Of a stretch of 64,000 bases of DNA, positions 1,790 through 62,916 are shown one piece after another; position 1 is the stretch's first letter, and each line of letters begins with the position of its first letter. A program made the translations under genes and the position numbers. The stretch covers positions 182,205-246,204 of the forward strand of contig NIVC01001472.1 in assembly GCA_002269645.1 (NCBI GenBank). Direction: 5' to 3'. The DNA comes from Macrostomum lignano. Its lineage: Eukaryota. The notes under the pieces were generated by a model. The model ran no database searches. It was not told the DNA's origin and was given only the letters and a program-made list of their open reading frames with translations.

Positions 1790-3541
1790 AACTGAGGAGA
1801 GGGTAGCGGCTGCCACTGAGACACTGAGGAGAGGGTAGCGGCTGCCAATGAGACACTGAGGAGAGGGTAGCGGCTGCCAATGAGGCACTAAGGAGAGGGT
1901 AGCGGCTGCCACTGAGACACTGAGGAGAGGGTAGCGGCTGCCACTGAGACACTGAGGAGAGGGTAGCGGCTGCCACTGAGACACTGAGGAGAGGGTAGCG
2001 GCTGCCACTGAGACACTGAGGAGAGGGTAGCGGCTGCCAATGAGGCACTAAGGAGAGGGTAGCGGCTGCCACTGAGACACTGAGGAGAGGGTAGCGGCTG
2101 CCACTGAGACACTGAGGAGAGAGTAGCGGCTGCCACTGAGACACTAAGGAGAGGGTAGCGGCTGCCACTGAGACACTGAGGAGAGGGTAGCGGCTGCCAC
2201 TGAGACACTGAGGAGAGGGTAGCGGCTGCCACTGAGGCACTAAGGAGAGGGTAGCGGCTGCCACTGAGGCACTAAGGAGAGGGTAGCGGCTGCCACTGAG
2301 GCACTAAGGAGAGGGTAGCGGCTGCCACTGAGACACTGAGGAGAGGGTAGCGGCTGCCACTGAGACACTAAGGAGAGGGTAGCGGCTGCCAATGAGGCAC
2401 TAAGGAGAGGGTAGCGGCTGCCACTGAGACACTGAGGAGAGGGTAGCGGCTGCCAATGAGGCACTAAGGAGAGGGTAGCGGCTGCCACTGAGACACTGAG
2501 GAGAGGGTAGCGGCTGCTACTGAGACACTGAGGAGAGGGTAGCGGCTGCCACTGAGGCACTAAGGAGAGGGTAGCGGCTGCCACTGAGACACTGAGGAGA
2601 GGGTAGCGGCTGCCACTGAGGCACTAAGGAGAGGGTAGCGGCTGCCACTGAGACACTGAGGAGAGGGTAGCGGCTGCCACTGAGGCACTAAGGAGAGGGT
2701 AGCGGCTGCCACTGAGACACTGAGGAGAGGGTAGCGGCTGCCACTGAGGCACTAAGGAGAGGGTAGCGGCTGCCACTGAGACACTGAGGAGAGGGTAGCG
2801 GCTGCCACTGAGGCACTAAGGAGAGGGTAGCGGCTGCCACTGAGACACTGAGGAGAGGGTAGCGGCTGCCAATGAGGCACTAAGGAGAGGGTAGCGGCTG
2901 CCACTGAGACACTGAGGAGAGGGTAGCGGCTGCCAATGAGGCACTAAGGAGAGGGTAGCGGCTGCCACTGAGACACTGAGGAGAGGGTAGCGGCTGCTAC
3001 TGAGACACTGAGGAGAGGGTAGCGGCTGCCACTGAGGCACTAAGGAGAGGGTAGCGGCTGCCACTGAGACACTGAGGAGAGGGTAGCGGCTGCCACTGAG
3101 GCACTAAGGAGAGGGTAGCGGCTGCCACTGAGACACTGAGGAGAGGGTAGCGGCTGCCACTGAGGCACTAAGGAGAGGGTAGCGGCTGCCACTGAGACAC
3201 TGAGGAGAGGGTAGCGGCTGCCACTGAGGCACTGAGGAGAGGGTAGCGGCTGCCACTGAGACACTGAGGAGAGGGTAGCGGCTGCCACTGAGGCACTAAG
3301 GAGAGGGTAGCGGCTGCCACTGAGACACTGAGGAGAGGGTAGCGGCTGCCACTGAGGCACTGAGGAGAGGGTAGCGGCTGCCACTGAGACACTGAGGAGA
3401 GGGTAGCGGCTGCCACTGAGGCACTGAGGAGAGGGTAGCGGCTGCCACTGAGGCACTAAGGAGAGGGTAGCGGCTGCCACTGAGACACTGAGGAGAGGGT
3501 AGCGGCTGCCACTGAGGCCCTGAGGAGAGGGTAGCGGCTGC
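1790..3541. repeat. 32-bp minisatellite (ACTGAGGAGAGGGTAGCGGCTGCCACTGAGAC), ~55 copies
   Basis: Direct periodicity of 32 bp with recurrent variant units. Confidence 0.95.
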
Positions 3542-20815: not shown

Positions 20816-22125
20816 CGAGGGTCACTCAGAAAGTCTTTAGCCTGAGTAGGATCCACGAGACGTAGAAGCATGAAATTTGTCTATGGTAAAGACCAACTTT
20901 TAAAAGTATCACAGCAAAAATTTCAAACAGAAGCAGCCACTTTTGAGTCCACTGCAGCGAGTTAAAGTCAGTTCACCCCCTGAGTTCTTCAATTCAACAA
21001 TGAAGCTGGAAAATCGCGACTTCAGAGCAATGTTGTACCTGCACTTCAAGCAAGGCAAGTCGCCGGCCGAATCGTATCAAACTTTACAGAACGTTTTCAC
21101 CCATGTATGTCCTTCATACGCAACCGTCAAAAACTGGTTTGCTGAGTTTCGCCGAGGTCGAGAAAGCCTCGAAGATGAACATCGATCCGGGAGACCCTGT
21201 GACGCAGTGACTCCACAAAATATCTGCGCTGTGTCCAGCATGATTGCCGCTGACCGGCGAGTGACCTACCAGCAGATCCAGCAGGAGATCGGTATTGGAT
21301 CGGGGAGTGTGCACGCCATTATGCACGAACACCTTGGAGTGCGGAAGCTGGCTTCCCAGTGGATCCCCCATCAGCTGTCGGACGTGCAGAAGGACACCAG
21401 GGTGGCTTGGTGCCGATTCATGCTGCAGAAATTCGAATCCGGGACCAGCCGGCGTATCTGGGACATCCTCACGGGCGATGAGACCTGGATTTATCAATAC
21501 GACCCCGAAAGCAAGCGCCAGTCAGCCATGTGGACCTTTGGAGACGAGGACAGCCCCACAAAGTTTCGACGCAGCCGGAGTGTCGGCAAGCAGATGGTGG
21601 CCTGTTTCTTCATGCGCACTGGGCATGTGGCTTCCGTTTCACTTGAAGATCGCCAGACAGTCACCGCTGACTGGTACACAACGGTTTGCCTGCCCAAGGT
21701 CTTTTCTGCTGTGAGCCAGAGGCGCCCAAGGTGCGGAATGCGTGGGGTGCTTCTGCACCACGACAACGCCAGCGCGCACACGGCGGCTCAAACTCTGGAG
21801 TTTCTGGCTGACTGTGGGGTCCAGCTGATGACTCACCCTGCTTACAGTCCAGACCTGGCACCGTGCGACTTTTTTCTGTTTCCGAAGTGCAAGGAGATTC
21901 TGAAGGGCCAGGTCTTTTCTTCACCGGAAGAAGCTGTGAATGAGTTTAAAAACATCATCGAGGAGCTCCGGGATGAGGATTGGCGGCAGTGCTTCGACAG
22001 CTGGTTTCACAGGATGCAAGCCTGTATCAATGCCGGTGGAGAGTATTTTGAGCACTTGTAGTCGTTTTTTAGTTCATTTGTTGCTGTTTTCGTGTTCAAG
22101 CTAAGAACTTTCTGAGTGACCCTCG
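20816..22125 (+). mobile_element. Full-length mariner (DD34D) DNA transposon, 1310 bp
   Basis: TA duplications at 20814-15 and 22126-27; 30-bp TIRs CGAGGGTCACTCAGAAAGT... (first 19 bp perfect, 3 mismatches overall); intact transposase ORF. Confidence 0.97.
21000..22061 (+). CDS. Mariner transposase, 353 aa
   Basis: ATG at 21000; motifs WIPHQL, GDETW, HHDNA, YSPDLAPCD; 34 residues between the 2nd and 3rd Asp; no stops or frameshifts. Confidence 0.96.
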   Translation: MKLENRDFRAMLYLHFKQGKSPAESYQTLQNVFTHVCPSYATVKNWFAEFRRGRESLEDEHRSGRPCDAVTPQNICAVSSMIAADRRVTYQQIQQEIGIGSGSVHAIMHEHLGVRKLASQWIPHQLSDVQKDTRVAWCRFMLQKFESGTSRRIWDILTGDETWIYQYDPESKRQSAMWTFGDEDSPTKFRRSRSVGKQMVACFFMRTGHVASVSLEDRQTVTADWYTTVCLPKVFSAVSQRRPRCGMRGVLLHHDNASAHTAAQTLEFLADCGVQLMTHPAYSPDLAPCDFFLFPKCKEILKGQVFSSPEEAVNEFKNIIEELRDEDWRQCFDSWFHRMQACINAGGEYFEHL

Positions 22126-23896
22126 TATATACATAGATTTAAAGATAGTTCATGTTTCACTGGGCTTACAATCAGGCTAAGCAAATATCCTCAAGTGCTT
22201 TTTGTGGAGTTGAGCAAAAGACAGACAATCAGTGAGAGTGTCTATAGCCTTGCAGAGCATGTTATCTATGAGCCATTGGTTGATTGCAACAAGACATCAA
22301 TCCATTTCCAATGTTAGCAATAGAAGCAAAATACAAAGGCAGTAAAAAATCTTCCCACTCCAATGGGGACATGTCCCTAGTGTCCCCCTGGCTATGCCTG
22401 GCTACATTGTATGTATTTAATGAATAATAATATTAACATTGATAGATAGAATAATATAAATAAGCCTACTAGATACAAACTGGGTTTATGTTGAATCTGG
22501 ATAGAACTTGTTATTTAGAAAGTATAGATCTTAAGTCTTGAAAATCTCAAAAATTTGATATTATCAGACCCTTAGCTAAGACCTATAGTACTAAGTATAG
22601 GCTTTGCACATTGTATATTAAAAATTAGATCACTATCTTAAATTATCTTAATTATATTAGTCATATATTCATAGGCTTATAATATAAATAGATAGACAAT
22701 AGAAAATACAATAGCTTCCAACCAAAAAATCTTTGCAAACTCTTTATTTATACTATACACATAGAAAATGATTGCTTAAGACCATGTTATTTATTATATA
22801 TTAGATGTAGATCTAGAAAATATTGAATGGGGATACAAAGTATTAAAGGTACTTATTAAAATATATTTTCCATAACCCCTATTAGGATAGAATCACCAAA
22901 ACCTTTAGATGCCATATAGAGGTACTTGAAAGGACCATGCCTACATAGCCCTATTGGAATAAGTGGCTTGGACACTCCTATGCAAAAGAAAAAAAGAGTT
23001 GTTACTTATGTGCCATAGTTCCATAGGCCAAAAAGTGGCCTTTACACAGGAAAATTCCAGCATATTTTTGCTCTCGCTGACAATCTTGTATACATTTGGC
23101 ATATAGAATTTTCAGGTTCAACATGAATTGTACATAGTTGGCATACAAAAATAGCCAAGTTCAAGGCTAATATAATCATGTAATTAAATATCAACCAACA
23201 AAAGCTCCTTTAAAAATAATCGGAAACTAGAACAAAAAATATTAACGCAATCTATAGGAAAAAACAAAATAAAAAAAAGAATATTAGTTCTTAGCAAAAA
23301 ATAGCCATGTTAAAGTTTAGTAAAACATTTTTCTCAAAATATATATTCTTAAAAAATTGACATAAAAACATTTTTGAGCTCAGCATAAATTTTTTTTAAA
23401 TACTACATTGGCATAAAATTGAAAAAACATGAATTTTCATTCTGGCATATGCCTGCCATGATCTGGACAATGGCCATAGTTTAGGCCAGATGTATGCCGG
23501 GATTTCCTGGTATACAACAAGGGTCTTATCATTTTTTAGCATAGGCTACATCAGGATGTATTCTGGCATATATGAAACAAGAGATATATTGTGTCAAATG
23601 ACAAATTTTTTGTATTGGCACATAAACCCGGCATACAAATGAGGTTATATCATTTTTTTCTAGTATTAAACTTGGCATATATTAATGGCAGTTGTTATTT
23701 GTCCAGTGACCGGACAAATAGCCTTTTTGATATTTGTCCGGTTAAATTGCTAACACAAATATCTTATTTGTTTTGTAATGAATATTCTAGATTTTTAAGA
23801 CCTTTTCTTGTATACTGATTAATATTTTCTTGTATTATTTGAGTGTAAGCAGCAAAGCAGTGTATTCAATTTGGCATAATTTGGTGTATAAGACAC

Positions 23897-24486: not shown

Positions 24487-24770
24487 TAAGACACATATTA
24501 GTATAACAATATAATAATCAAGACACAAGTAAGAAGTCTTTGAAGTCTAGGAATATTTACCCTTGTGGTTTTTATAAACTAGATATTTTAGCATTATCAA
24601 TTTAACTGGACAAATAACAAAATGTCCATTTGTCTAGTATTAACCGGATGAATAGGAAAGCCCTATTGCAGCGCATGGCTTAAGTACGCCAGACGCCTAC
24701 ACAACCTGCGCCACGCTGTGAAATGACTTACCTGTGAAAGAAACCCTAAAGCAAAATTAACGCAGTTTTA

Positions 24771-24833
24771 GGTAAACGGCAGAAGTAACTATGACTGTCT
24801 TATCAAGCCTAAATGCCTCGGCATCTAATTAGT
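24771..24833 (+). rRNA. Degenerate ~63-nt 28S rRNA fragment (helix 69-71 region); not a gene
   Basis: GGTAAACGGCAGAAGTAACTATGACTGTCTTATCAAGCCTAAATGCCTCGGCATCTAATTAGT vs recalled eukaryotic LSU GGTAAACGGCGGGAGTAACTATGACTCTCTTAAGGTAGCCAAATGCCTCGTCATCTAATTAGT. Confidence 0.85.
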
Positions 24834-25068
24834 ACCGCGCCGCGCCGTACTAATCGCCGCGCGCCGTACGCGCCGCGCCGCGCCGTATTAGATCCGCGCC
24901 GGACGCCGTCCGCCAAAATGCCCATGCGCTGCAATCAGGTAGGAAAGCATGGTCAGGATCCAGTAACCAGACAAATAACCACATTGCTATTCATCCGGTC
25001 ACTGGACAAATAACAACTGCCTATATTAATACACAATCCAAACTATGGCTTATATGTAGGTGCAACTA

Positions 25069-25131
25069 GATAAATAGTAAGAATAACTATGACTATTTTA
25101 TTAAGGCTAAATGCTTTATCATCTAATTAGT
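25069..25131 (+). rRNA. More degenerate copy of the same 28S fragment
   Basis: Retains TAACTATGACT, GCTAAATGC and TCATCTAATTAGT at the same spacing. Confidence 0.65.
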
Positions 25132-25447
25132 CCATATACTAAAACTTTACTACCTCTATATTCTTTTTGGTAAGCATTTTTGCAACTTATCCCTAGTTTA
25201 CCACAATTTACAGTGGCCAAATTAGCCAGGTTGGCTACATACATGCGCAACTGCTGGCCGACCTGGCCGATCCGGCCACCGTAAATCGTGGCTGACCAGG
25301 GGTAAGTCGCAAAATTGAGTCAACCAAAAACAGAAAAACACAAGAACCAAGAAAGGCAAGAGGAAAGCGAAAAAAGAGCAGTTCAGGGAAAATGGTGAAG
25401 CAAAAGAAAAACAATTCGCAAAAGAAGCAAACTAAGTTGTAAAAATA

Positions 25448-26155
25448 ATCAGGTAAGTCGCAAAAAGGATCAGGTAAGTCGCAAAAGGGTTAGGTAAGTC
25501 GCAAAAGGATTAGGTAAGTCGCAAAAGGATTAGGTAAGTCGCAAATGGATTAGGTAAGTCGCAAAAGGGTTAGGTAAGTCGCAAAAGGATTAGGTAAGTC
25601 GCAAAAAGGATTAGGTAAGTCGCAAAAAGGATTAGGTAAGTCGCAAATGGATTAGGTAAGTCGCAAAAGGGTTAGGTAAGTCGCAAAAGGGTTAGGTAAG
25701 TCGCAAAAAGGATTAGGTAAGTCGCAAAAAGGATTAGGTAAGTCGCAAAAAGGATTAGGTAAGTCGCAAAAGGGTTAGGTAAGTCGCAAAAAGGATTAGG
25801 TAAGTCGCAAAAGGATTAGGTAAGTCGCAAAAGGATCAGGTAAGTCGCAAAAGGATTAGGTAAGTCGCAAAAGGATCAGGTAAGTCGCAAAAGGATTAGG
25901 TAAGTCGCAAAAGGGTTAGGTAAGTCGCAAAAAGGATTAGGTAAGTCGCAAAAAGGATTAGGTAAGTCGCAAAAAGGATTAAGTAAGTCGCAAAAAGGAT
26001 TAGGTAAGTCGCCAAAGGGTTAGGTAAGTCGCAAAAGGGTTAGGTAAGTCGCAAAAGGATTAGGTAAGTCGCAAAAAGGATTAAGTAAGTCGCAAAAAGG
26101 ATTAGGTAAGTCGCAAAAAGGATTAGGTAAGTCGCAAAAAGAAGCAACTAAGTCG
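25448..26155. repeat. 20-21-bp minisatellite (TAGGTAAGTCGCAAAA(A)GGAT), ~33 copies, inside the hAT element
   Basis: Direct tandem periodicity; unit contains the element's subterminal motif GTAAGTCGCA. Confidence 0.95.
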
Positions 26156-26316
26156 CAATAAGAGGGAAGTAAGTCACAATCAGAGGCAATCAGGGGGTAG
26201 TAGGTGCAAGTGTGGCAGGAGAGCAAAAACAGAATAGAAGCCTTCAACAACAGACAAGATCTTTGAAATCAGAAGCCCGCGTCAACAGTTTCCCATTGAT
26301 TTCTTAAACTCTGGAG

Positions 26317-26390
26317 CAGGGGTTGGCAAACTCCGGCTCGCGAAGCCCCTCTATCTGGCCCTCGCCCCTCGGGTTCTTTGAAACTTCCTA
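26317..26390 (+). mobile_element. Left-end fragment of a hAT-Charlie-type element
   Basis: CAGGGGTTGGCAAACTCCGGCTCGCGA preceded by CTCTGGAG (close to the NTCTAGAN target consensus); no right end found. Confidence 0.6.
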
Positions 26391-26394
26391 ACTA

Positions 26395-27339
26395 CGAGGG
26401 GCGTCCGGAAAGTAGTGTTACTTTTGCTTGGTGTCATTTGAAAGCGGCAAGTCTCTTCTTTAAAATGACACCAATTGCAAGAGATTTGAATCTGTGCTTC
26501 AAGAGATATGGACGATTAAGTAGAGAAAGGTCAGTCATAGACTTACAGAACCTCAAAAATGTCAACAGAAAACTTTTACGATTTTATCGATTTTTTCGTA
26601 ATCATGGGCTGTCTATGGCCAAATGTGATGCAGTGAACGAGAGGGGCTGTCTCATAAAACTACGAGACTTGTAAAATTGCTTCTGCTGCGCCTGCAAAGT
26701 TTATTGACATTCAATTTTCAATTGTGAACTGCAAATGGATGTGCATTCAAAGACTGGGCAGCGACATGCCATCTTTACACTTTGGGGCTGTCTCATAAAA
26801 CTACGAGACTTGTAAAAATGCTTCTGCTGCGCCTGCAAAGTTTATTGACATTCAATTTTCAATTGTGAACTGCAAATGGATGTGCATTCAAAGACTGGGC
26901 AGCGACATGCCATCTTTACACTTTGGAGCTCCGGAACCAAATCGGCTGACATCCACAGGCAACTTTGCACAGCTCATGGCGACCATGCTGTCAGCAAGAT
27001 GACAAGTCTGCCAACCGATGAATGATTTTAATGTTGTTCGCTTGTGTGATAATTTGCTTGTTATCTGTTTCACCTGCTTCTGTACTGTACTGTTGTGTTT
27101 TTTGTTTTTTCTGGAGTAATTACGCTCGTGATAAAAGTTTTCTGTTGACATTTTTGAGGTTCTGTAAGTCTATGACTGACCTTTCTCTACTTAATCGTCC
27201 ATATCTCTTGAAGCACAGATTCAAATCTCTTGCAATTGGTGTCATTTTAAAGAAGAGACTTGCCGCTTTCAAATGACACCAAGCACATGCAAGTGTGACT
27301 GTCCATACGTCCACACCAAGCAAAAGTAACACTACTTTC
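26395..27339. mobile_element. Mariner-derived fold-back MITE with ~170-bp inverted arms; right terminus truncated
   Basis: TA|CGAGGGGCGTCCGGAAAGT left end; arms 26408-26578 and 27132-27339 essentially perfect apart from a 37-bp insertion; internal 141-bp tandem duplication (26643-26924). Confidence 0.85.
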
Positions 27340-27374
27340 TTAAGGTTGGTAACATTACTTAGGTTGGTGTCTCT

Positions 27375-28025
27375 TCAACTCTCATCTCTCTCTTCTTCTC
27401 TACCTTGCCTCCCCTCTTCTCTCTCTCCCCCTTTTCCCTCTTCTCTCTCCTCTCTTCTCCTCCTTTCTCTCTACCCTTTCTCCTCAATGCCCTCTTCTCT
27501 CCTCTTATCTTCAGCAAAAATATGTGCATATTTTCTTACTTCAAAGTAGAGGGAATAGAAGATTAGAGATAAGCAAACAGAGGAGAGGCGAGCGATGCGA
27601 TGGGAGAAAAGATAGAAGAGGAGAGAAAAGCTGAGGGAGGAAAAAGAGATGAGAGAGAAGAGGAGATGAGAGGAAAGAGGAAAGAAAAGATGATGGATGA
27701 GATCAGAAGAGAGGAAAGAGGAAAGAGAAGAAAGTAGATGAGAGAAGAGAGGATAAAGAGGAGATGAGAGGAGAGTGAAGAGAGGAGAGATGAGAGAGTA
27801 GAAAAGAGAGGAGAGATAAGATGAGAGAGTAGAGTGGAGAGAGACGAGAGGGAAGATAAGATGAGAGAGTAGAGTGGAGTGGAGAGAGACAAGAGGAGAG
27901 ATAAGAATGTAGAGAGGAGACAGAAGAGATAGGAGAGGAGAGAGGAGAGAGGAGAGGAAAGAGAGAAGGGATAAGGGATGAGAGAGAAAAGAAAAAGAGG
28001 ATGAGAAGATTGAGGAATGGAGAGA
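27375..28025. repeat. CT-rich then GA-rich low-complexity tract
   Basis: Pyrimidine tract ~27375-27510 followed by purine tract ~27570-28025. Confidence 0.85.
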
Positions 28026-28440
28026 ATTTGCAAAGGCCTCAAATCTTAGTTTAACATGCATTACTCCCATCTTTGCCTTTTTCCTAACTGTTAACAAGTT
28101 TTTGTTTGAGCATGACTTCAAATTTAGAATCTATGCAAAAATAGTTCCGGGAATTGGAATTCAGTGGTTTCAAAATCTGTGGGTTTTCACAGCTTGTATC
28201 TCTACTGGATTCGTATTCTGCATCTGATGAGCCATCTGAATCAGGGCTCTCATCTTCCATGCCAAATCGTTCTTGAGCTATAGGTCACACTGTATTCACT
28301 TCACTTACTTCTGGACATTCATGAATCATGACTTTTGTAGTATGCTCACTACACTGTACTGACAATTTACTAATTGCTTCATGCCGCCACTAGATGACAT
28401 ACTGATTAGCTGTTATAAAAACGCCGAATCTGCACGCAGC

Positions 28441-28503
28441 ACTAATTAGCTGGCGAGGCATTTAGCTTTTAAAATATGGTCATAGTTACTCCTGCCGTTT
28501 ACC
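28441..28503 (-). rRNA. Degenerate 28S rRNA fragment (helix 69-71) near the right end of the hAT element
   Basis: Reverse complement GGTAAACGGCAGGAGTAACTATGACCATATTTTAAAAGCTAAATGCCTCGCCAGCTAATTAGT. Confidence 0.8.
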
Positions 28504-29689
28504 TAAAGTTTTTGCTAGGCTCTTTCATAGGTAAGTCGCATTTTTTATCGAAAACTAAGTCGCACGGCCAGCGTAATTTCAGAAGTTGCGCATGTATGGT
28601 TGGCTAGCAGTTATATATGTATGATTTCTAGAAATCATTGACATAGTCTAACAAAAGTATTGCCTGTGTAGTTGATAATTAACTACTTACTAGCCTCTGT
28701 AGTCAGTCTTCTTTATGCCTATTAAAGAAAGGAAGTTATAGAAGTCTAATGCTATCAAAAAAGTACTGGCTTCTAATACTCTGATACCCAAAAGGTATGG
28801 TCAATAATAGGCCTATCACTATTAAAGTATTGGAATATTGGAATTGTGCCCAACATTGTTAAAAATAAAATTACAACTACTAGGCCTAACTTACCAACCA
28901 AAATATTCCACTTTTAGGGCCTACCAAACTTAAAAAGGTAGGCCTAGTTTTATTACAAAAGCAACTTATAACAAAATAAACAATGTGACTGAATGAAATG
29001 ATTGTCACCAAAATAACTTGTCACCAAAATGACCTGCACCTAGATAAGACTGGTTCAAATAGCCATAGGATAGCATATTGTATTATTGAAATTAAGTGCT
29101 TGCAAAGTTTTATTTCAAAAAGTTTGAACAAGTATAATTATAAGTGCCTAGCAACTAGCATAAATTATTGTATAGGATTGGTCTAACAATGTTTCATGGT
29201 AGATCTACAAGTAAAATATATTGTACTGTAATATCAGTACTGCTATTGCGGTACTTTTGTACGTCATTTTCATTTATTGCGCTAGGCCTACTCTAACTAG
29301 TCTAGGCCTATTATAAAAAGCCATAAGCATAAGTTTTAAGGCCTAGATAAATTAAACTAATACTTATAATGAAGAAAAAAGACAAACTCAAATTCAAAAG
29401 TTAACCCAGTAACAAACAAAACACTTCAATAAGACATAGATGATCAAGAAATATATCGGACAAAGAAAATGGGACCACGGTTTTTTGGATAATTCTCTGA
29501 AATTCATTCTTTCCGAACAATAAATCGTACAAATTCGTCATTACATAGTCAAACAAAGTTTTCTTGCTGTGGTACAAAGTAAGTAAGAGAGATTGTGATA
29601 AATTGAATTTAAGGATTGATTTTTAAATAAAATTAGTTTAGAAGACAATTATTTATTTGACTATTTTTATTTATGCTTAAAAATTTTAA

Positions 29690-36091: not shown

Positions 36092-36483
36092 CGTATCGTA
36101 CAGACATTTACGAACTCTCGTGGACTCCTGGAACCATCTGGACTGGAAGAGACGCACAGACATTCTTAGACATCTGTATATCTTGTACCTTTAAAAATAT
36201 TTGATAAACTTTAAAAGCATTACAATTTACAAGTTTCATTAACGAATACTTTTAATAGTACACTAAGAAGTTTGTCCCCTCCATGCTGGCACGATTGACC
36301 TCAGGTGGCCTTGTTTATAATGAGTTGGGCGAAAAAACCGCCCCCCCCTTTCCCTCGCCCTGGACGAAGAATAATGAGAAATTCGAAGTCAAAAGAAAGT
36401 GTTAGGTTACCCCAGGGTTGGGCCTAGACCCTCTGAAGCAACTAATTAATCTGCTTCAAGTTCAAGCCAGCCAGCCAGCTTAC

Positions 36484-36720
36484 ATTAGCATATGGAGCTT
36501 TGTTAATGCCCGAGCCTGCATAGCTGGGACTGCCGCCGCCGCAGCCTCGCCTAACGCACAGGATGCAGGCGTTGCAAATGTGGCCAGATCGATTGCGCGC
36601 CTTGGCGCCAAACACCTGCGCGAAATTGGCTTCGTAATCGGTTGACAATTGGAAACGGGTTGTGCTGCTCTTTGTTGCACAAATACAGCAGCCGTCTTTG
36701 TGCCGAAACTGCTGCTTCAT
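36484..36720 (-). CDS. SINHCAF: SINHCAF/FAM60A homolog, coding exon 1 (zinc-finger-like domain); whole protein ~302 aa
   Basis: DGCCICATKSSTTRF...YEANFAQVFG...RSGHICNACILCVRR matches recalled FAM60A EGCCICRAKSSSSRF...YEKDFQSCFG...RSGDICNACVLLVKR; GTAAGC donor phase 0. Confidence 0.92.
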
Positions 36721-37426
36721 TGGGGTGTACTTTAGTTAGTTTGCTATTCAACACTCTTTGTTTCAATCTCGACCACAGCAACAAAGACTAGCGGCTGTCA
36801 GCAAGGAGTCTGAGCAGAATGGCACTGCAACTCGCCCAGCGCTTTGTGAGCAGTAAGTTCTGCAATACTGAAAGTTGGATAAAGAGTTAAAGCCCTGTAA
36901 GGTTTTTTGTAAAGAATTTTAAACCATATTAACTAGATATTACTTTAGAATTAAAAAAATCCCTTTATGTAAGATAAGTATAAATACTTGGTGATTTCAT
37001 TCATTGTACTACAATGAACTCAAAGGGTCAAATTATTCTTTGGCCTATGCCTATTTTTTTGTTTTTATATTTTCAGAAAATAACATTTTATTTGCTAGTA
37101 AAAACATAAAATAAATCTTCAATTTATTTACTCATAAACTGTTTATATATTTATTATATTATAATAAAAATATTATTTGTTTCTCTTGATTGAGATATTG
37201 GATAGCTGTCTTTATTTAGCCAGTCTTTCAATCAATATTGATATTTTTTGTTTTGGTCAATCATCTTAGGAGTATGCTAGAAGGTAGAAGCTAGAAGCCT
37301 GCTAGAAGCCCATAAAAAGATATGTATGATATATTGAAACAAGTATAAATTTTAGATATTTAAATATTCTAATAGAACAAGTGAACTAGGTTAAAAATAT
37401 TAAAGGTATTTAAAAAGATAATACAA

Positions 37427-44145: not shown

Positions 44146-45014
44146 CAATCTTTTCTGAGTCAACGCACAACAATCAACAAGAGTTCAGCACTTCCAAAAA
44201 TGAGCACATTTTAAATTGAAAGACAGCTTCCGCAGAGCTAGTAGAGTAAGGAGAGAGTGAAACAAATTAAAAGGGCCTCCTGGCTCAGTGTATGTAGAGA
44301 GAGAGAGAGGGTGGAGCGGCCACTCCAGTAGTGTATTTCACAGATAGACAGGCAAGCAAGGTGCCAAGCGAAAGTCTGCAGCTCCAATATGCGAGTAGGG
44401 TGTTAGCTGGTATTATGTTTGTTCTGGTCAAGCGCTTCAATATTGAATGTGTCAGCTCCCAGCACATAGCTGCGCGGCCTGCATGGGTGTTGGGAGAAAA
44501 ATAAGTGCGAAATATTGGGGGTGGAGCAGTGGCTGTTTAGCTTAGCATAAGCTAGTCCTCAAATGAGGATTCAGACTGCGACTGGCTTGAATTTCACTGA
44601 CTTTTCTCTCTCTCTCTTTCAATTCTCGGTTTTTTGTGTTCAGCTTGAGTGAGCAAAGCTGCATTTTGACTGGCTCTGGCTTGGATTGTAAATGCCGCTT
44701 GACCTGCTAAGACTCTTGATGCCTCAGACTGAGAGACGCTGCTCTCTTATGTCTGGATTGGACAGTTTTATTAGGGGGTCCTTGGCTTGCTCTATAGGTT
44801 TTTGGCTGCCTGAGACAGTGCTGCTGTTGATAGGCGGTGAAGGTAAGACTGAAAGTCTGCGTCCCTGTCTGTTTTGGAGCAGAGGCTCGTTAACTTACTG
44901 TTCTCGACTGTGAGATAGTTCACGTGGTCAAGTCACAGTTTGATGGAAGTTGCGGGTCTGAACTAATTGACTTTATTCATTAGCCTTTTAGCCTTTGACT
45001 TAGGGACTCTGGAA

Positions 45015-46443
45015 GCCTGAAGAACTAGTAGTGAGACTGAAGGACTAGTAGTGAGACTGAAGGACTAGTAGTGAGACTGAAGGACTAGTAGTGAGACAGC
45101 CTGAAGGACTAGTAGTGAGACTGAAGGACTAGTAGTGAGACTGAAGGACTAGTAGTGAGACAGCCTGAAGGACTAGTAGTGAGACTGAAGGACTAGTAGT
45201 GAGACTGAAGGACTAGTAGTGAGACAGCCTGAAGGACTAGTAGTGAGACAGCCTGAAGGACTAGTAGTGAGACAGCCTGAAGGACTAGTAGTGAGACAGC
45301 CTGAAGGACTAGTAGTGAGACAGCCTGAAGGACTAGTAGTGAGACAGCCTGAAGGACTAGTAGTGAGACAGCCTGAAGGAATGGTAGTGAGACAGCCTGA
45401 AGGACTGGTAGTGAGACAGCCTGAAGGACTAGTAGTGAGACTGAAGGACTAGTAGTGAGACAGCCTGAAGGACTAGTAGTGAGACAGCCTGAAGGACTAG
45501 TAGTGAGACTGAAGGACTAGTAGTGAGACTGAAGGACTAGTAGTGAGACAGCCTGAAGGACTAGTAGTGAGACAGCCTGAAGGACTAGTAGTGAGACAGC
45601 CTGAAGGACTAGTAGTGAGACAGCCTGAAGGACTAGTAGTGAGACAGCCTGAAGGACTAGTAGTGAGACAGCCTGAAGGAATGGTAGTGAGACAGCCTGA
45701 AGGACTGGTAGTGAGACAGCCTGAAGGACTAGTAGTGAGACTGAAGGACTAGTAGTGAGACAGCCTGAAGGACTAGTAGTGAGACAGCCTGAAGGACTAG
45801 TAGTGAGACAGCCTGAAGGACTAGTAGTGAGACAGCCTGAAGGACTAGTAGTGAGACAGCCTGAAGGACTAGTAGTGAGACAGCCTGAAGGAATGGTAGT
45901 GAGACAGCCTGAAGGAATGGTAGTGAGACAGCCTGAAGGACTGGTAGTGAGACAGCCTGAAGGAATGGTAGTGAGACAGCCTGAAGGACTAGTAGTGAGA
46001 CAGCCTGAAGGACTGGTAGTGAGACAGCCTGAAGGAATGGTAGTGAGACAGCCTGAAGGACTAGTAGTGAGACAGCCTGAAGGAATGGTAGTGAGACAGC
46101 CTGAAGGAATGGTAGTGAGACAGCCTGAAGGACTAGTAGTGAGACAGCCTGAAGGACAGGTAGTGAGACAGCCTGAAGGACAGGTAGTGTGTCAGCCTGA
46201 AGGAATGGTAGTGAGACAGCCTGGAGGAATGGTAGTGAGACAGCCTGAAGAACTAGTAGTGAGACACCCTGAAGGAATGGTAGTGAGACAGCCTGAAGGA
46301 CAGGTAGTGAGACAGCCTGAAGGACAGGTAGTGTGTCAGCCTGAAGGAATGGTAGTGAGACAGCCTGAAGGAATGGTAGTGAGACAGCCTGAAGGACTAG
46401 TAGTGAGACACCCTGAAGGAATGGTAGTGAGACAGCCTGAAGG
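45015..46443. repeat. 24-bp minisatellite (CAGCCTGAAGGACTAGTAGTGAGA) with a 20-bp variant lacking CAGC, ~60 copies
   Basis: Direct tandem periodicity; 300-bp block duplication (45361/45661). Confidence 0.95.
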
Positions 46444-47207
46444 ATCACTGCTAGGCTCGTATTTGAACCAAAGCGAGACAGCAATTTATTTGTATCGAGT
46501 AACAGAGTTGCCCAAAGCGAAGTAGAATAGGCCAAAAAGCAGAGATAAAATCTGTAAAACTTTCGCTTTATTGTCCGACACAATGCTACACGACCCCCCC
46601 TCCTGAGTCGCTCCAATGGAGAGTTCTATGAGAACAAGAATCGAACAAAAGGCCACACTACATAGCATTCGGGCGTGCGGGACCACCCCACAGATAGGCT
46701 GATAGCAACTATAAGATAAAAATTGAGCAAATGCTCATATGATAAAGCATATATTTCAGTGTCTATTCTAGTGCATTCTAATAGCATCCAGTACCGTCAA
46801 GCAGTTCTAATACAAATAATAAATGCGCAATAAGCCTCAGCCGAGTGCGCAGTTGAGCGGTTCGGACAAATTTTGTGCTGAGTTGCACATTTTCTATAAA
46901 AAAACATTCGACACAAACTTTTGCTTCACTGCACCAGTGAGCATAAGAGAGACCAGGGCAGCACCAGAGGGAGAATAACAGTGGTTTTTTTTCTCCGATC
47001 GAGAAAATTCTGTCAATGTCACGAAATCCTCCCGCCACCCAGTGGCGACCCAGGCTGAGGGTTCTATTCCAATGAGTATAATCATAAATGCGAATTGGAA
47101 TGCCTTCTTATGGATATTTCTATGCTCTAAGCCGGTAAACATTAACAATTATGCTGCTAATATGTTAATATAGATTCTAAATTAGCGATTAATGTTAACT
47201 GCTTTGG

Positions 47208-52019: not shown

Positions 52020-52760
52020 TTCGCGATCAACCCGAGTTGGCTTGGTGATCAACGCATCCAAGACTGAGGTGTCCACGTGGGCACTGCAACTACCCCTGCG
52101 CTAGCTCTTCCAAATGGAGAAGTCGTCAAGGTGTGCGAGGACTTCCGCTACCTCGGCTCCCTTGTCTTGAGCCCCGACACCATTGTTTCTGACAGGAGGA
52201 CTCAGGCCTGGCGTGCGGCACGCATGCTCAGGAGCGTCTTCAATTCAACCGCTAGCGACGACCTAAAGATGCGCCTTTTCCGCACTGCCGTTGAGCCGAT
52301 TCTCCTATATGGCATGGAGGCTGTGCCAATGACTGCGACGCGACAGCAAGCCCTGGATGCCCACTACAGGTCGTTGCTCCGCTATGCCCTGGGCGTGCAC
52401 TACCCTGATACTGTGCCGACCAGGGACCTGATGACTCGCGCTGGTGTTCCCGCGCTCAGCTGCACTATCCGTAAACGCCGTCAGATGTTACTTGGCCCAC
52501 TGTCTAAGAAGCCACGGCCGCGGCGAGCAAAATCCTCTGGCGCTGGCTCTCCTGCATCAGCCCACTGAGCGCCTGCGTCGTGGCCAAGGCCGAACTGTGA
52601 CGCTAAATGATACGTTTCTGACTGACTTGCAGGCCATCGGGCTCAGCCCCAGTCCGCCATGACTTGCCCCTCTTGGTTGTTCTGCGAACGCGTCCGCGCA
52701 AAGTCTAGCTAGATCTCTTTTTGTCTGTACTACTCTCTGCGTCGCCATATATATATATAA
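52020..52760 (+). mobile_element. 5'-truncated, frameshifted non-LTR retrotransposon fragment (RT C-terminus; RTE-like)
   Basis: GLVINASKTEV, FRYLGS, VEPILLYGMEA motifs; frameshifts near 52075 and 52495; ends near a (TA)n tract at 52747. Confidence 0.8.
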
Positions 52761-58004: not shown

Positions 58005-61000
58005 CCTAAAAGCACAGCCTAAGAGCTTATAGAACAGCCTAAAAGCACAGCCTAAGAGCTTATAGAACAGCCTACATGCTTACAGAACAGCCTACATGCT
58101 TACAGAACAGCCTACATGCTTACAGAACAGCCTACATGCTTACAGAACAGCCTACATGCTTACAGAACAGCCTACATGCTTACAGAACAGCCTATATGCT
58201 TACAGAACAGCCTACATGCTTACAGAACAGCCTACATGCTTACAGAACAGCCTACATGCTTACAGAACAGCCTATATGCTTACAGAACAGCCTACATGCT
58301 TACAGAACAGCCTACATGCTTACAGAACAGCCTACATGCTTACAGAACAGCCTACATGCTTACAGAACAGCCTACATGCTTACAGAACAGCCTACATGCT
58401 TACAGAACAGCCTACATGCTTACAGAACAGCCTACATGCTTACAGAACAGCCTACATGCTTACAGAACAGCCTACATGCTTACAGAACAGCCTACATGCT
58501 TACAGAACAGCCTACATGCTTACAGAACAGCCTACATGCTTACAGAACAGCCTACATGCTTACAGAACAGCCTACATGCTTACAGAACAGCCTACATGCT
58601 TACAGAACAGCCTACATGCTTACAGAACAGCCTACATGCTTACAGAACAGCCTACATGCTTACAGAACAGCCTACATGCTTACAGAACAGCCTACATGCT
58701 TACAGAACAGCCTACATGCTTACAGAACAGCCTACATGCTTACAGAACAGCCTACATGCTTACAGAACAGCCTACATGCTTACAGAACAGCCTACATGCT
58801 TACAGAACAGCCTATGCTTACAGAACAGCCTACATGCTTACAGAACAGCCTACATGCTTACAGAACAGCCTACATGCTTACAGAACAGCCTACATGCTTA
58901 CAGAACAGCCTACATGCTTACAGAACAGCCTACATGCTTACAGAACAGCCTACATGCTTACAGAACAGCCTACATGCTTACAGAACAGCCTACATGCTTA
59001 CAGAACAGCCTACATGCTTACAGAACAGCCTACATGCTTACAGAACAGCCTACATGCTTACAGAACAGCCTACATGCTTACAGAACAGCCTACATGCTTA
59101 CAGAACAGCCTACATGCTTACAGAACAGCCTACATGCTTACAGAACAGCCTACATGCTTACAGAACAGCCTATATGCTTACAGAACAGCCTACATGCTTA
59201 CAGAACAGCCTACATGCTTACAGAACAGCCTACATGCTTACAGAACAGCCTACATGCTTACAGAACAGCCTACATGCTTACAGAACAGCCTACATGCTTA
59301 CAGAACAGCCTACATGCTTACAGAACAGCCTACATGCTTACAGAACAGCCTACATGCTTACAGAACAGCCTACATGCTTACAGAACAGCCTACATGCTTA
59401 CAGAACAGCCTACATGCTTACAGAACAGCCTACATGCTTACAGAACAGCCTACATGCTTACAGAACAGCCTACATGCTTACAGAACAGCCTACATGCTTA
59501 CAGAACAGCCTACATGCTTACAGAACAGCCTACATGCTTACAGAACAGCCTACATGCTTACAGAACAGCCTACATGCTTACAGAACAGCCTACATGCTTA
59601 CAGAACAGCCTACATGCTTACAGAACAGCCTACATGCTTACAGAACAGCCTACATGCTTACAGAACAGCCTACATGCTTACAGAACAGCCTACATGCTTA
59701 CAGAACAGCCTACATGCTTACAGAACAGCCTACATGCTTACAGAACAGCCTACATGCTTACAGAACAGCCTACATGCTTACAGAACAGCCTACATGCTTA
59801 CAGAACAGCCTACATGCTTACAGAACAGCCTACATGCTTACAGAACAGCCTACATGCTTACAGAACAGCCTACATGCTTACAGAACAGCCTACATGCTTA
59901 CAGAACAGCCTACATGCTTACAGAACAGCCTACATGCTTACAGAACAGCCTACATGCTTACAGAACAGCCTACATGCTTACAGAACAGCCTACATGCTTA
60001 CAGAACAGCCTACATGCTTACAGAACAGCCTACATGCTTACAGAACAGCCTACATGCTTACAGAACAGCCTACATGCTTACAGAACAGCCTACATGCTTA
60101 CAGAACAGCCTACATGCTTACAGAACAGCCTACATGCTTACAGAACAGCCTACATGCTTACAGAACAGCCTACATGCTTACAGAACAGCCTACATGCTTA
60201 CAGAACAGCCTACATGCTTACAGAACAGCCTACATGCTTACAGAACAGCCTACATGCTTACAGAACAGCCTACATGCTTACAGAACAGCCTACATGCTTA
60301 CAGAACAGCCTACATGCTTACAGAACAGCCTACATGCTTACAGAACAGCCTACATGCTTACAGAACAGCCTATATGCTTACAGAACAGCCTACATGCTTA
60401 CAGAACAGCCTACATGCTTACAGAACAGCCTACATGCTTACAGAACAGCCTACATGCTTACAGAACAGCCTACATGCTTACAGAACAGCCTACATGCTTA
60501 CAGAACAGCCTACATGCTTACAGAACAGCCTACATGCTTACAGAACAGCCTACATGCTTACAGAACAGCCTACATGCTTACAGAACAGCCTACATGCTTA
60601 CAGAACAGCCTACATGCTTACAGAACAGCCTACATGCTTACAGAACAGCCTACATGCTTACAGAACAGCCTACATGCTTACAGAACAGCCTACATGCTTA
60701 CAGAACAGCCTACATGCTTACAGAACAGCCTACATGCTTACAGAACAGCCTACATGCTTACAGAACAGCCTACATGCTTACAGAACAGCCTACATGCTTA
60801 CAGAACAGCCTACATGCTTACAGAACAGCCTACATGCTTACAGAACAGCCTACATGCTTACAGAACAGCCTACATGCTTACAGAACAGCCTACATGCTTA
60901 CAGAACAGCCTATGCTTACAGAACAGCCTACATGCTTACAGAACAGCCTACATGCTTACAGAACAGCCTACATGCTTACAGAACAGCCTACATGCTTACA

Positions 61001-62803
61001 GAACAGCCTACATGCTTACAGAACAGCCTACATGCTTACAGAACAGCCTACATGCTTACAGAACAGCCTACATGCTTACAGAACAGCCTACATGCTTACA
61101 GAACAGCCTACATGCTTACAGAACAGCCTACATGCTTACAGAACAGCCTACATGCTTACAGAACAGCCTACATGCTTACAGAACAGCCTACATGCTTACA
61201 GAACAGCCTACATGCTTACAGAACAGCCTACATGCTTACAGAACAGCCTACATGCTTACAGAACAGCCTACATGCTTACAGAACAGCCTACATGCTTACA
61301 GAACAGCCTACATGCTTACAGAACAGCCTACATGCTTACAGAACAGCCTACATGCTTACAGAACAGCCTACATGCTTACAGAACAGCCTACATGCTTACA
61401 GAACAGCCTACATGCTTACAGAACAGCCTACATGCTTACAGAACAGCCTACATGCTTACAGAACAGCCTACATGCTTACAGAACAGCCTACATGCTTACA
61501 GAACAGCCTACATGCTTACAGAACAGCCTACATGCTTACAGAACAGCCTACATGCTTACAGAACAGCCTACATGCTTACAGAACAGCCTACATGCTTACA
61601 GAACAGCCTATATGCTTACAGAACAGCCTACATGCTTACAGAACAGCCTACATGCTTACAGAACAGCCTACATGCTTACAGAACAGCCTACATGCTTACA
61701 GAACAGCCTACATGCTTACAGAACAGCCTACATGCTTACAGAACAGCCTACATGCTTACAGAACAGCCTACATGCTTACAGAACAGCCTACATGCTTACA
61801 GAACAGCCTACATGCTTACAGAACAGCCTACATGCTTACAGAACAGCCTACATGCTTACAGAACAGCCTACATGCTTACAGAACAGCCTACATGCTTACA
61901 GAACAGCCTACATGCTTACAGAACAGCCTACATGCTTACAGAACAGCCTACATGCTTACAGAACAGCCTACATGCTTACAGAACAGCCTACATGCTTACA
62001 GAACAGCCTACATGCTTACAGAACAGCCTACATGCTTACAGAACAGCCTACATGCTTACAGAACAGCCTACATGCTTACAGAACAGCCTACATGCTTACA
62101 GAACAGCCTACATGCTTACAGAACAGCCTACATGCTTACAGAAGCCTACATGCTTACAGAACAGCCTACATGCTTACAGAACAGCCTACATGCTTACAGA
62201 ACAGCCTACATGCTTACAGAACAGCCTACATGCTTACAGAACAGCCTACATGCTTACAGAACAGCCTATATGCTTACAGAACAGCCTACATGCTTACAGA
62301 ACAGCCTACATGCTTACAGAACAGCCTACATGCTTACAGAACAGCCTACATGCTTACAGAACAGCCTACATGCTTACAGAACAGCCTACATGCTTACAGA
62401 ACAGCCTACATGCTTACAGAACAGCCTACATGCTTACAGAACAGCCTATATGCTTACAGAACAGCCTACATGCTTACAGAACAGCCTACATGCTTACAGA
62501 ACAGCCTACATGCTTACAGAACAGCCTACATGCTTACAGAACAGCCTACATGCTTACAGAACAGCCTACATGCTTACAGAACAGCCTACATGCTTACAGA
62601 ACAGCCTATATGCTTACAGAACAGCCTACATGCTTACAGAACAGCCTACATGCTTACAGAACAGCCTATATGCTTACAGAACAGCCTACATGCTTACAGA
62701 ACAGCCTACATGCTTACAGAACAGCCTACATGCCTACAGAACAGCCTACATGCTTACAGAACAGCCTACATGCTTACAGAACAGCCTACATGCTTACAGA
62801 ACA
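58005..62803. repeat. 4.8-kb highly homogeneous 20-bp satellite (CAGAACAGCCTACATGCTTA), ~238 copies, intronic
   Basis: Direct periodicity with only a handful of variant units. Confidence 0.98.
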
Positions 62804-62916
62804 GACTCAATCATGCAACAACTTTTCTATTAGTAGCGGTGCACCCAGAGTGAGCCATACTCCAAAATTGATTTGTAAAACCCTGTCAAAAATGGAACAT
62901 TTCTAACACCCCAAAG

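Follow-up and report, generated by a model that had tools for sequence, protein, structure and literature searches.

At a single locus of an animal genome, a fragment of the 28S/LSU rRNA gene is carried by three nested copies of non-autonomous cut-and-paste transposons. The fragment covers helices 69–71 (H69–H71) and the R2/I-PpoI site, and its three copies, whose carriers show a readable order of nesting, descend from one origin. We think it rather probable that the module containing the fragment is a passenger, a piece of rDNA captured once by a hAT-like family and later moved into an unrelated MITE.

A 28S fragment present in three copies

Comparison of the module with the whole window, that is, the entire 64-kb stretch of DNA analysed, by blastn recovered three copies of this ~115-nt module, all within 4 kb, and no fourth copy elsewhere in the 64 kb, in agreement with the preliminary description of a three-copy module of ~110 bp. 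Copy A (24725–24840, plus strand) consists of a non-LSU leader (24725–24770) and an LSU-derived part (24771–24840) that includes an altered R2/I-PpoI core (24797–24809). Copy B (25067–25131, plus strand; block at 25069–25131, core at 25095–25107) clearly keeps the LSU part only. Copy C (28435–28537) lies on the minus strand, with the leader at 28537–28504, the LSU block at 28503–28441, a tail to 28435 and the altered core at 28477–28465. Between copies A and C, identity is 77% across 115 columns (blastn E 5e-19), and copy B is 83% identical to A over 53 nt and 75% identical to C over 65 nt.

Searches with the Rfam model LSU_rRNA_eukarya (RF02543) matched copy A to positions 2200–2314 (25.9 bits, E 8e-5, in a 136-nt search) and copy C to positions 2221–2313 (16 bits, E 0.09), and did not detect copy B. 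Local alignment to the Rfam LSU consensus scored 83, 44 and 75 for A, B and C, respectively, against ~15 for shuffled sequences (sd 2.3). A block of 63 nt aligned without gaps to both the consensus and a true LSU gene, and the Rfam match was collinear. Significant similarity to RF02543 begins at about position 2245, and only the final 63–70 nt of the module (positions ~2245–2314, with helices 69–71 and the R2/I-PpoI target) are demonstrably LSU; the first ~45 nt, compared with 70 true LSU genes, scored 17, which is the level of shuffles (null mean 17.1). These results agree with the earlier proposal that the last ~63 nt are the conserved LSU segment containing helix 69. Neither copy A nor copy C reached the gathering threshold of the model (50), and a scan of the window gave no match to any Rfam model at gathering score, indicating that the module contains a 70-nt LSU fragment and not a gene.

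The transposons that carry the module

Copy C is carried by a young, non-autonomous hAT-like element of 3361 bp (25238–28598, minus strand). Its TIR, CATACATGCGCAACT, is identical at both ends (15/15) and occurs once in each orientation in the window, and a perfect 8-bp TSD, GTTGGCTA, flanks it at 25230–25237 and 28599–28606. The module starts 61 bp inside the right terminus, which matches the ~60 bp noted previously. Both the 8-bp TSD and the short TIRs are those of hAT elements; of the hAT target consensus nTnnnnAn, the TSD has the T at position 2, and position 7 is T, not A. P-type elements likewise produce 8-bp TSDs, so that the label hAT-like is provisional. The one notable internal ORF, of 58 aa (28084–28260, minus strand), had no Pfam match and no homologue. 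The element also contains a tandem array (see below) and, separate from the module, a nested mariner-derived foldback element (26408–27339) with arms of 161 nt at 98% and 27 nt at 100% identity, an internal 141-bp duplication and an HTH_48 remnant (Pfam, E 3.4e-6).

The young element entered an older copy of its own family, 17 bp from the terminus. This older copy is a CpG-decayed deletion derivative of ~200 bp (25051–25237, resuming at 28607–28623; minus strand) with a CpG o/e of 0.00 and an uncertain boundary on the side of copy B. The joined segments 25161–25237 and 28607–28623 are homologous to the left end of the young element, with 73 of 94 positions identical, 17 of the 21 mismatches being transitions, and a score of 94 compared with 22 ± 4 for shuffles; the alignment extends exactly to the terminus. 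The module thus occupies the same relative place in two separate insertions, one young and one old and transition-decayed, indicating that it is a trait of the hAT-like family. Copy B, which had been described as a third, decayed copy between two elements, is real, but it is part of this older insertion and not free-standing.

Copy A lies in a non-autonomous MITE of 278 bp (24662–24939), bounded by the TIR CCT(G)ATTGCAGCGCATGG, in which 17 bases match with one 1-nt gap, and by a perfect 9-bp TSD, TAGGAAAGC (9/9; 24653–24661 and 24940–24948), bearing out its earlier placement inside an element with a 9-bp TSD. This MITE (GC 0.55, CpG o/e 1.56) is itself inserted in another MITE (~24600–25019). 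The core of its TIR occurs in the window only at its own two ends; the window holds no second copy, and its TIRs are unrelated to those of the hAT-like element. The TSD is within the 9–11 bp of Mutator/MULE elements, but the TIRs, of 17–18 bp, are not the long ones of that superfamily, and no MURA-type transposase was found in the window. Because Merlin-type elements also give TSDs of 8–9 bp, we withhold a superfamily assignment for the MITE. The assignment of the two carriers to MULE-like and hAT superfamilies, made at the outset, therefore stands as to TSD lengths and unrelated TIRs, but no transposase of any kind was found in the window and the hAT and MULE labels are drawn from TSD length and TIRs only.

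Origin of the leader

The leader of the module contains the motif GGTAAGTCGCA, which is a repeated motif of the young hAT-like element itself. About 34 copies of a 20-bp unit, AGGTAAGTCGCAAAAGGATT, form the tandem array of this element (25451–26139, plus strand); outside the array, one GGTAAGTCGCA lies near the left end (25301) and one in the module leader (28530), and a shorter form, TAAGTCGCA, is found at 28556. All of the 34 occurrences on that strand, except that of the module, are in the array or the left end of the element, and we therefore assign the leader to the hAT-like element. The leader had been equated with the 5' end of U1 snRNA. The 9-mer ACTTACCTG, equal to that end and complementary to the 5' splice site, is indeed literally present at the 5' edge of copy A, but copy C has ACTTACCTA, nothing past the 9-mer is U1-like, and three permissive Rfam scans gave no U1 match at E values up to 10. 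As the motif is the element's own repeat, we rejected a U1 leader.

Single capture and proposed transfer

Copies A and C share 32 of 34 aligned pairs in the non-LSU leader, a common tail past the LSU part and the same LSU end point. The shared non-LSU leader, together with several derived changes common to the copies, indicates one capture that was then passed on. The proposal of a captured rDNA piece spread by cut-and-paste elements is thus upheld as to the capture, which was single, and as to the spread, which involves two unrelated kinds of element bounded by TSDs and TIRs; since copy B lies in the older hAT-like copy, the contexts amount to two families and not three.

We propose that a single copying event placed ~70 nt of host-type 28S (helices 69–71) subterminally in a non-autonomous hAT-like transposon, adjoining one of the repeated GGTAAGTCGCA motifs of this element, and that the piece has since been carried passively with each cut-and-paste event. 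Later, a block of ~120–150 bp comprising motif, leader, LSU piece and tail may have been taken into the unrelated 9-bp-TSD MITE, probably by template switching during gap repair or by nested insertion followed by deletion. Both the mechanism of capture and the status of the LSU piece as a passenger are inferred. Our one basis for the direction of transfer, which would be from the hAT-like element to the MITE, is the motif argument. The module may also be present across the 9-bp-TSD MITE family, but the sample is small and local, with three copies within 4 kb.

Divergence of the cleavage core and loss of RNA structure

The 13-nt cleavage core, whose intact form in R2/I-PpoI targets is CTCTTAAGGTAGC, differs from LSU at 7 of 13 positions in every copy, so none of them is an intact target, whereas the 50-nt flanks differ at 4 to 11 positions. 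Likewise, copies A and C differ from each other at 6 of 13 core positions and at 6 of 84 elsewhere (p ~0.001). Three core positions are identically altered in A, B and C, and five changes are common to at least two copies, indicating that the core was already damaged in the common ancestor. The preliminary description was right that both flanks persist around a changed core and that the copies differ there, but its view of a core altered differently in all three overlooks these shared changes. No copy has an indel in the 63-nt block; leader and tail have several. All 11 differences from LSU in the flanks of copy B are transitions, and 6 of the 10 differences between A and C within the block are transversions. 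The flank changes common to the copies, GGCAGGAG and GCTAAATG, are both natural variants in true LSU genes.

The H69 stem has lost two or three of its five pairs in each copy, as previously noted; pairing of helices 69 and 71 was not preserved, and folding energies of the module were no different from those of shuffles (z-scores −0.85 to +0.96). The module has lost its RNA structure and is no longer rRNA-like in fold or coding. The functions suggested at first, as a relic of an rDNA-targeting ancestor, a homing guide, a decoy or a source of small RNAs, are hypothetical.

Pure neutral decay of a passenger is expected to produce even divergence; the observed pattern is uneven, which counts against our reading. 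Uniform decay, which had been named as grounds for refutation, is thus not what the copies show, the core being far more diverged than the flanks.

Alternative explanations

The concentration of changes exactly in CTCTTAAGGTAGC, both relative to LSU and between A and C, raises the question of whether the LSU piece interacts with an rDNA-specific nuclease (an R2-type protein, a Pokey-type transposase or a homing endonuclease), with cleavable copies being lost or a dead-centre binding decoy being kept. The 28S flanks of the target site are bound by R2-type proteins, and the spacing is kept in all three copies, with 63 nt free of indels; the A–C block differences, 6/10 of them transversions, are unlike the transition-only decay of B, and the 70-nt LSU stretch of copy A extends 35 nt to either side of the R2 bottom-strand nick. 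We nevertheless regard this as quite unlikely: the sample is limited to 13 positions in three copies, the AT-rich mutated core may be hypermutable or slightly misaligned, and the window contains no R2, Pokey, rDNA or homing endonuclease. Moreover, A and C agree as closely in the non-LSU leader (32/34) as in the LSU flanks (46/50), which argues against a special constraint on the flanks. Even less likely, in our judgement, is that the module is the record or tool of a conflict between transposons and an rDNA-specific nuclease, with flanks kept at exact spacing and a core changed repeatedly; here, look-alikes of the rDNA target, scattered and resistant to cleavage, could titrate the nuclease or lead it astray, or could survive because cleavable versions were destroyed.

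A purely local event, in which repair of the MITE copy drew on a nearby hAT-like copy for filler DNA and no spread between two families took place, would fit the confinement of all three copies to 4 kb of the 64, the position of copy A ~110 bp from the old hAT-like copy and the lack in the window of a second 9-bp-TSD MITE copy for comparison. However, copy A is no near-copy of its neighbours, being 77% identical to C, with four leader indels, and 83% to B. Moreover, perfect TSDs and a CpG o/e of 0.9–1.6, against 0.58 for the window, give both the MITE and the young hAT-like element a recent appearance. For two such young insertions, an identity of 77% suggests that the separation took place in master lineages, and we consider a local event unlikely, though worth keeping in mind. 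It is highly improbable that transposons landed around LSU pieces already in place, whether scattered rDNA relics (orphons) or separate captures of one 28S region: GGCAGGAG and GCTAAATG, as natural LSU variants, could stem from the source 28S and not from shared descent, but A and C lie within elements delimited by TIRs and TSDs, have in common a tail and a non-LSU leader of ~45 nt, and share with B three identical changes in a universally conserved core. We give almost no credence to a small-RNA-derived retroelement, either a U1-headed (SINEU-like) or a SINE28-like SINE, nested in DNA transposons. The U1-like 9-mer of copy A would suit it, and SINEs with U1/U2 heads (PMC5786205) or 28S-derived sequence (PMC4994717) exist; yet, besides the differing sequence in C and the lack of Rfam U1 matches, the motif is the complement of the 34-fold repeat of the hAT-like element, the module has no poly(A), LINE-type tail or TSD of its own, and SINE28 derives from the 28S 3' end and not from H69–H71 (PMC4994717).

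Significance and relation to known systems

If the module is a passenger, a 28S coding fragment in DNA transposons joins the short list of rDNA-derived TE modules, and the locus provides a clean, small case of a module passing between unrelated MITE families. Such copies are also a hazard for annotation, as they can pass for rDNA relics, R2 target sites or loci of rRNA-derived small RNAs. If, instead, the core changes were driven by a nuclease, the copies would be natural target-site look-alikes shaped by an rDNA-specific nuclease, bearing on how R2-type specificity is maintained and on the use of such elements as site-specific insertion tools.

The LSU block covers the in vitro R2 target sequence and the I-PpoI/H69 site, but differs from a functional target in its recognition and cleavage core, changed at 7/13 positions in every copy, and in the lack of R2 or homing endonucleases in the window. 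Pokey/mPok (piggyBac, Daphnia) is similar in that a DNA transposon and its MITEs contain internal rDNA-derived sequence and are linked to the same 28S site. The insertion target of Pokey in the 28S gene is the TTAA within CTCTTAAGG. However, Pokey carries IGS repeats and not the 28S target (PMC10946416); the elements described here are flanked by TSDs of 8 and 9 bp rather than by TTAA, and none was seen inserted in rDNA.

Most likely, the presence of a 28S fragment in these DNA transposons is an uncommon instance of a type of event already known. A 2024 review attributes rDNA-derived TE modules to modular reshuffling, especially in non-autonomous elements and mostly without benefit to the TE (PMC10946416). 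As in transduplication, the capture of host sequence by non-autonomous DNA transposons, and in the review's cases of rDNA in TEs, a fragment of a cellular gene lies between the TIRs of a non-autonomous element and is propagated along with it; the table of the review, however, lists 5S promoters, Pokey IGS repeats and, for 28S, SINE28 alone, with no 28S coding fragment in a hAT-like element or 9-bp-TSD MITE, and the fragment found here is the H69–H71/R2 target with a mutated core. In the mammalian SINE28, too, 28S rRNA sequence forms a mobile element, but this is a Pol III-transcribed retroposon derived repeatedly from the 28S 3' end (PMC4994717), whereas our module is internal 28S (~2245–2314 of 3401 model positions), lacks retroposon hallmarks, travels in cut-and-paste elements and goes back to one capture. 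The passage from the hAT-like family to the 9-bp-TSD MITE has a parallel in the conserved SINE V domain, which moved into the MER6 MITE (PMC6887750), so that a module from one TE class came to lie inside, and spread with, a MITE of another. That domain belongs to SINEs and is conserved across metazoans, whereas the module described here is a fragment of an rRNA gene, so far from a single locus.

A 28S-derived module in three copies

Blastn of the module, a unit of ~115 nt composed of a non-LSU leader, an LSU-derived (28S) block of 63–70 nt and a tail, located three copies in the window and none beyond them: A (24725-24840, plus strand), the shorter and more decayed B (25067-25131, plus strand) and C (28435-28537, minus strand). 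Copies A and C are 77% identical across 115 columns (E 5e-19), and an independent repeat search of the window recovered identical A/B/C pairs. The feature is real and was rightly placed in the preliminary description.

Its ribosomal origin is apparent from alignments. In permissive Rfam scans, copy A alone was collinear with positions 2200-2314 of LSU_rRNA_eukarya (25.9 bits, E 8e-5) and copy C matched positions 2221-2313 (16 bits); copy B, whose decay is too advanced, gave no Rfam LSU match. The whole-window Rfam scan at gathering thresholds produced no matches, the LSU similarity surfacing only in short permissive scans. Scores against the Rfam consensus were 83, 44 and 75 for A, B and C, with shuffles at ~15 (sd 2.3), and the 63 nt from GGTAAACGG to TAATTAGT aligned gap-free in all three copies with both the consensus and a true metagenome LSU gene. 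This stretch holds helix 69 (H69), the I-PpoI site and the R2 target (PMC2602781; PMC13000458). LSU homology could not be extended into the leader: the first ~45 nt of the module, when set beside the corresponding part of 70 true LSU genes, scored 17, level with the shuffles (null mean maximum 17.1), and are not demonstrably ribosomal. The original assignment of the last ~63 nt to LSU is therefore accurate. H69 pairing is also broken, as had been described, with two or three of the five stem pairs lost in each copy; minimum free energies of modules and LSU blocks were like those of shuffles (z -0.85 to +0.96).

Carriers of the module

Copy C is carried by a young, non-autonomous hAT-like element (25238-28598), 61 bp inward of its right end. 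The element is delimited by a 15-nt TIR, CATACATGCGCAACT, identical at both ends, and flanked by a perfect 8-bp TSD, GTTGGCTA. Its interior contains an array in which a 20-bp unit is repeated 34 times, a GA/CT-rich stretch and, nested within it, a mariner-derived foldback element; no transposase was found inside the hAT-like element. Copy A is carried by a 278-bp MITE (24662-24939) whose TIRs match over 17 bases, a single 1-nt gap aside, and which is flanked by a perfect 9-bp TSD, TAGGAAAGC. This MITE is itself nested in a further MITE (~24600-25019), with a second, partial copy 0.9 kb upstream (23680-23764); the inverted repeats of the latter family contain GGACAAATAAC. The names hAT and MULE for the carriers are provisional, having TSD length and TIRs as their whole basis.

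Copy B had been described as a third decayed copy between the other two; the copy is indeed present, and its context is an old copy of the hAT-like family. We reconstructed this old copy (25051-25237, continuing at 28607-28623) by removing the young element and one copy of the TSD, joining 25237 to 28607. The joined sequence aligned at 73 of 94 positions with the young left end once the latter was reverse-complemented (score 94, shuffles 22 ± 4), and the match reached the terminus. The target of the young insertion was therefore an older copy of its own family in the opposite orientation, entered 17 bp short of that copy's end. Within the old copy, which measures ~200 bp, copy B is separated from the left-end homology by 29 nt, so that B and C belong to two separate insertions of one family, in which the modules occupy a matching relative place and orientation. 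As the end of the old copy on the module-B side we considered TATGTAGGTGCAAC, which is TIR-like at 9 of 14 positions, and rejected it as it lacks a matching TSD.

The old copy has a CpG o/e of 0.00, compared with 0.58 for the window, and 17 of its 21 mismatches with the young left end are transitions. This total loss of CpG (25051-25237, as compared with 25238-25450 in the young element), together with the transition-rich decay, suggests that transposons are subject to cytosine methylation in this animal.

Several further features lie within or beside the young element. The arms of the foldback element (26408-27339) comprise 161 nt at 98% identity and an outer 27 nt at 100%; the element also has a tandem duplication of 141 bp in its interior and retains 49 aa of a Mos1-type HTH domain (HTH_48). 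On the strand of module C, and about 175 bp inward from it, lies an ATG-initiated ORF of 58 aa (28084-28260, minus strand) with an acidic, serine-rich start; it showed no Pfam match and no homologue in the protein collection, and may represent what is left of the first exon of the lost transposase. A CT-rich then GA-rich stretch (27379-27990) forms a long imperfect inverted repeat with spurious plant-miRNA Rfam matches. Two miRNA-like Rfam matches were discarded as artefacts, one (25169-25323) being a hairpin formed by the end of the young element inverted beside that of the old copy, and the other (27442-27680) an inverted low-complexity CT/GA-rich stretch.

The leader is a motif of the hAT-like element

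The GCGACTTACC of the leader is the complement of GGTAAGTCGCA, an 11-mer that forms the core of the 20-bp array unit in the young element, recurs 64 bp inside its left end and is found decayed at the matching place in the old copy; a variant sits 19 bp outward of the module. The leader motif belongs to the hAT-like element, in which it is a repeated, subterminal feature. The proposal that the leader equals the 5' end of U1 snRNA was not upheld: identity stops after nine bases in A and after eight in C, three permissive Rfam scans returned no U1 match, and the motif is the element's own repeat. Because part of this motif is present in copy A, transfer from the hAT-like family to the 9-bp-TSD MITE is the likelier direction.

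A single capture and an uneven divergence

The non-LSU leaders of A and C are identical at 32 of 34 aligned pairs, with four indels totalling 12 nt, and the two copies also agree in where the LSU part ends and in having a recognisable tail beyond it. Within the 63-nt block, we distinguished the 13-nt R2/I-PpoI cleavage core from its flanks, the other 50 nt. The core was originally reported as altered differently in all three copies; they do differ, but three core positions carry an identical base change in A, B and C, and five carry a derived base common to at least two copies. The core sequence is universally conserved in LSU (PMC2602781), so these changes cannot stem from the source gene, and the ancestor of A, B and C therefore already had a damaged core. 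Conversely, the flank changes GGCAGGAG and GCTAAATG, common to copies, are both natural variants in true LSU genes and may reflect the source gene. The best reading is a 28S fragment that was captured once and rides in non-autonomous DNA transposons.

Beside this passenger reading, the over-diverged cleavage core is an odd detail. Seven of the 13 core positions differ from LSU in each copy, as compared with 4, 11 and 5 of the 50 flank positions in A, B and C (Fisher p = 7e-4, 0.03 and 1.5e-3), and A and C differ from each other at 6 of 13 core positions versus 6 of 84 elsewhere (p about 0.001). Within the block, transversions make up 6 of the 10 differences between A and C (the flank changes of B are all transitions), and no copy has an indel there, although several occur in leader and tail. 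The LSU stretch of A (24771-24840) extends 35 + 35 nt to the two sides of the R2 bottom-strand nick, with boundaries uncertain by a few bases. These observations sit poorly with simple decay; they are compatible with a filter against copies retaining a cleavable target, and equally so with an AT-rich mutable patch combined with a sample of three. The non-LSU leader is conserved between A and C as well as the LSU flanks are, which argues against a special constraint on the ribosomal part.

By their perfect TSDs and their CpG o/e (1.56 and 0.9–1.2, respectively; window, 0.58), the copy A MITE and the young hAT-like element both appear to be recent, yet their modules are only 77% alike. This favours long separate descent in two families, as far as a single locus can suggest, over a local copy-over.

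Sequence searches and other features of the window

A scan of metagenomes with a module-specific pattern recovered 69 loci, all of them true LSU genes with the natural GCTAAATG variant and none a transposon copy of the module; the bacterial and archaeal genome scan gave two contigs, both true eukaryotic LSU, and the viral contigs scanned gave no matches. Eukaryotic LSU was present in contigs filed under bacterial MAGs, namely Nitrosomonadales SPBV01000080.1 (5800-6000 of the examined stretch) and Paracoccus denitrificans VAFL01000052.1 (minus strand, ~200-220 of the examined stretch), which are therefore probably binning contaminants.

Minisatellites with units of 11–47 bp form 27 arrays and account for roughly 21 kb, or about one-third, of the window (e.g. 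58047-62804, 45014-46444 and 1791-3541). In the largest array a 20-mer is repeated 238 times at 99% identity, because of which all three forward frames are open for ~4.7 kb. An intact mariner transposase ORF of 353 aa (21000-22061, plus strand) matches HTH_48, Transposase_1 and DDE_3; the closest protein in the collection searched is only 65% identical to it, and the collection has no record of the exact protein. The only clear host gene piece seen in the window is an exon for the N-terminal part of a FAM60A/SINHCAF-family protein (36445-36735, minus strand; Pfam PF15396, E 1.1e-16), with no homologues in the protein collection; it identifies the host as a metazoan. A 166-aa open frame (52068-52565, plus strand) reads by eye like the C-terminal portion of a reverse transcriptase from a non-LTR retrotransposon (FRYLG... 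motif) and had no Pfam match.

Comparison with known systems

In the literature, Repbase and Dfam being outside the scope of the search, no description of this 28S segment within hAT-like elements or 9-bp-TSD MITEs came to light, and there were no matches to the TIR, 20-mer or module-variant strings. The cases named in a 2024 review of rDNA-TE relations are 5S promoters, found in SINEs and in the LTR elements Cassandra and Ajax, the 28S sequence of SINE28 and the IGS repeats of Pokey; the review explains these acquisitions by modular reshuffling that mostly brings the TE no benefit (PMC10946416). SINE28 is a Pol III retroposon that originates from the 28S 3' end (PMC4994717), and the V domain of the MER6 MITE provides a precedent for the transfer of a module between TE classes (PMC6887750).
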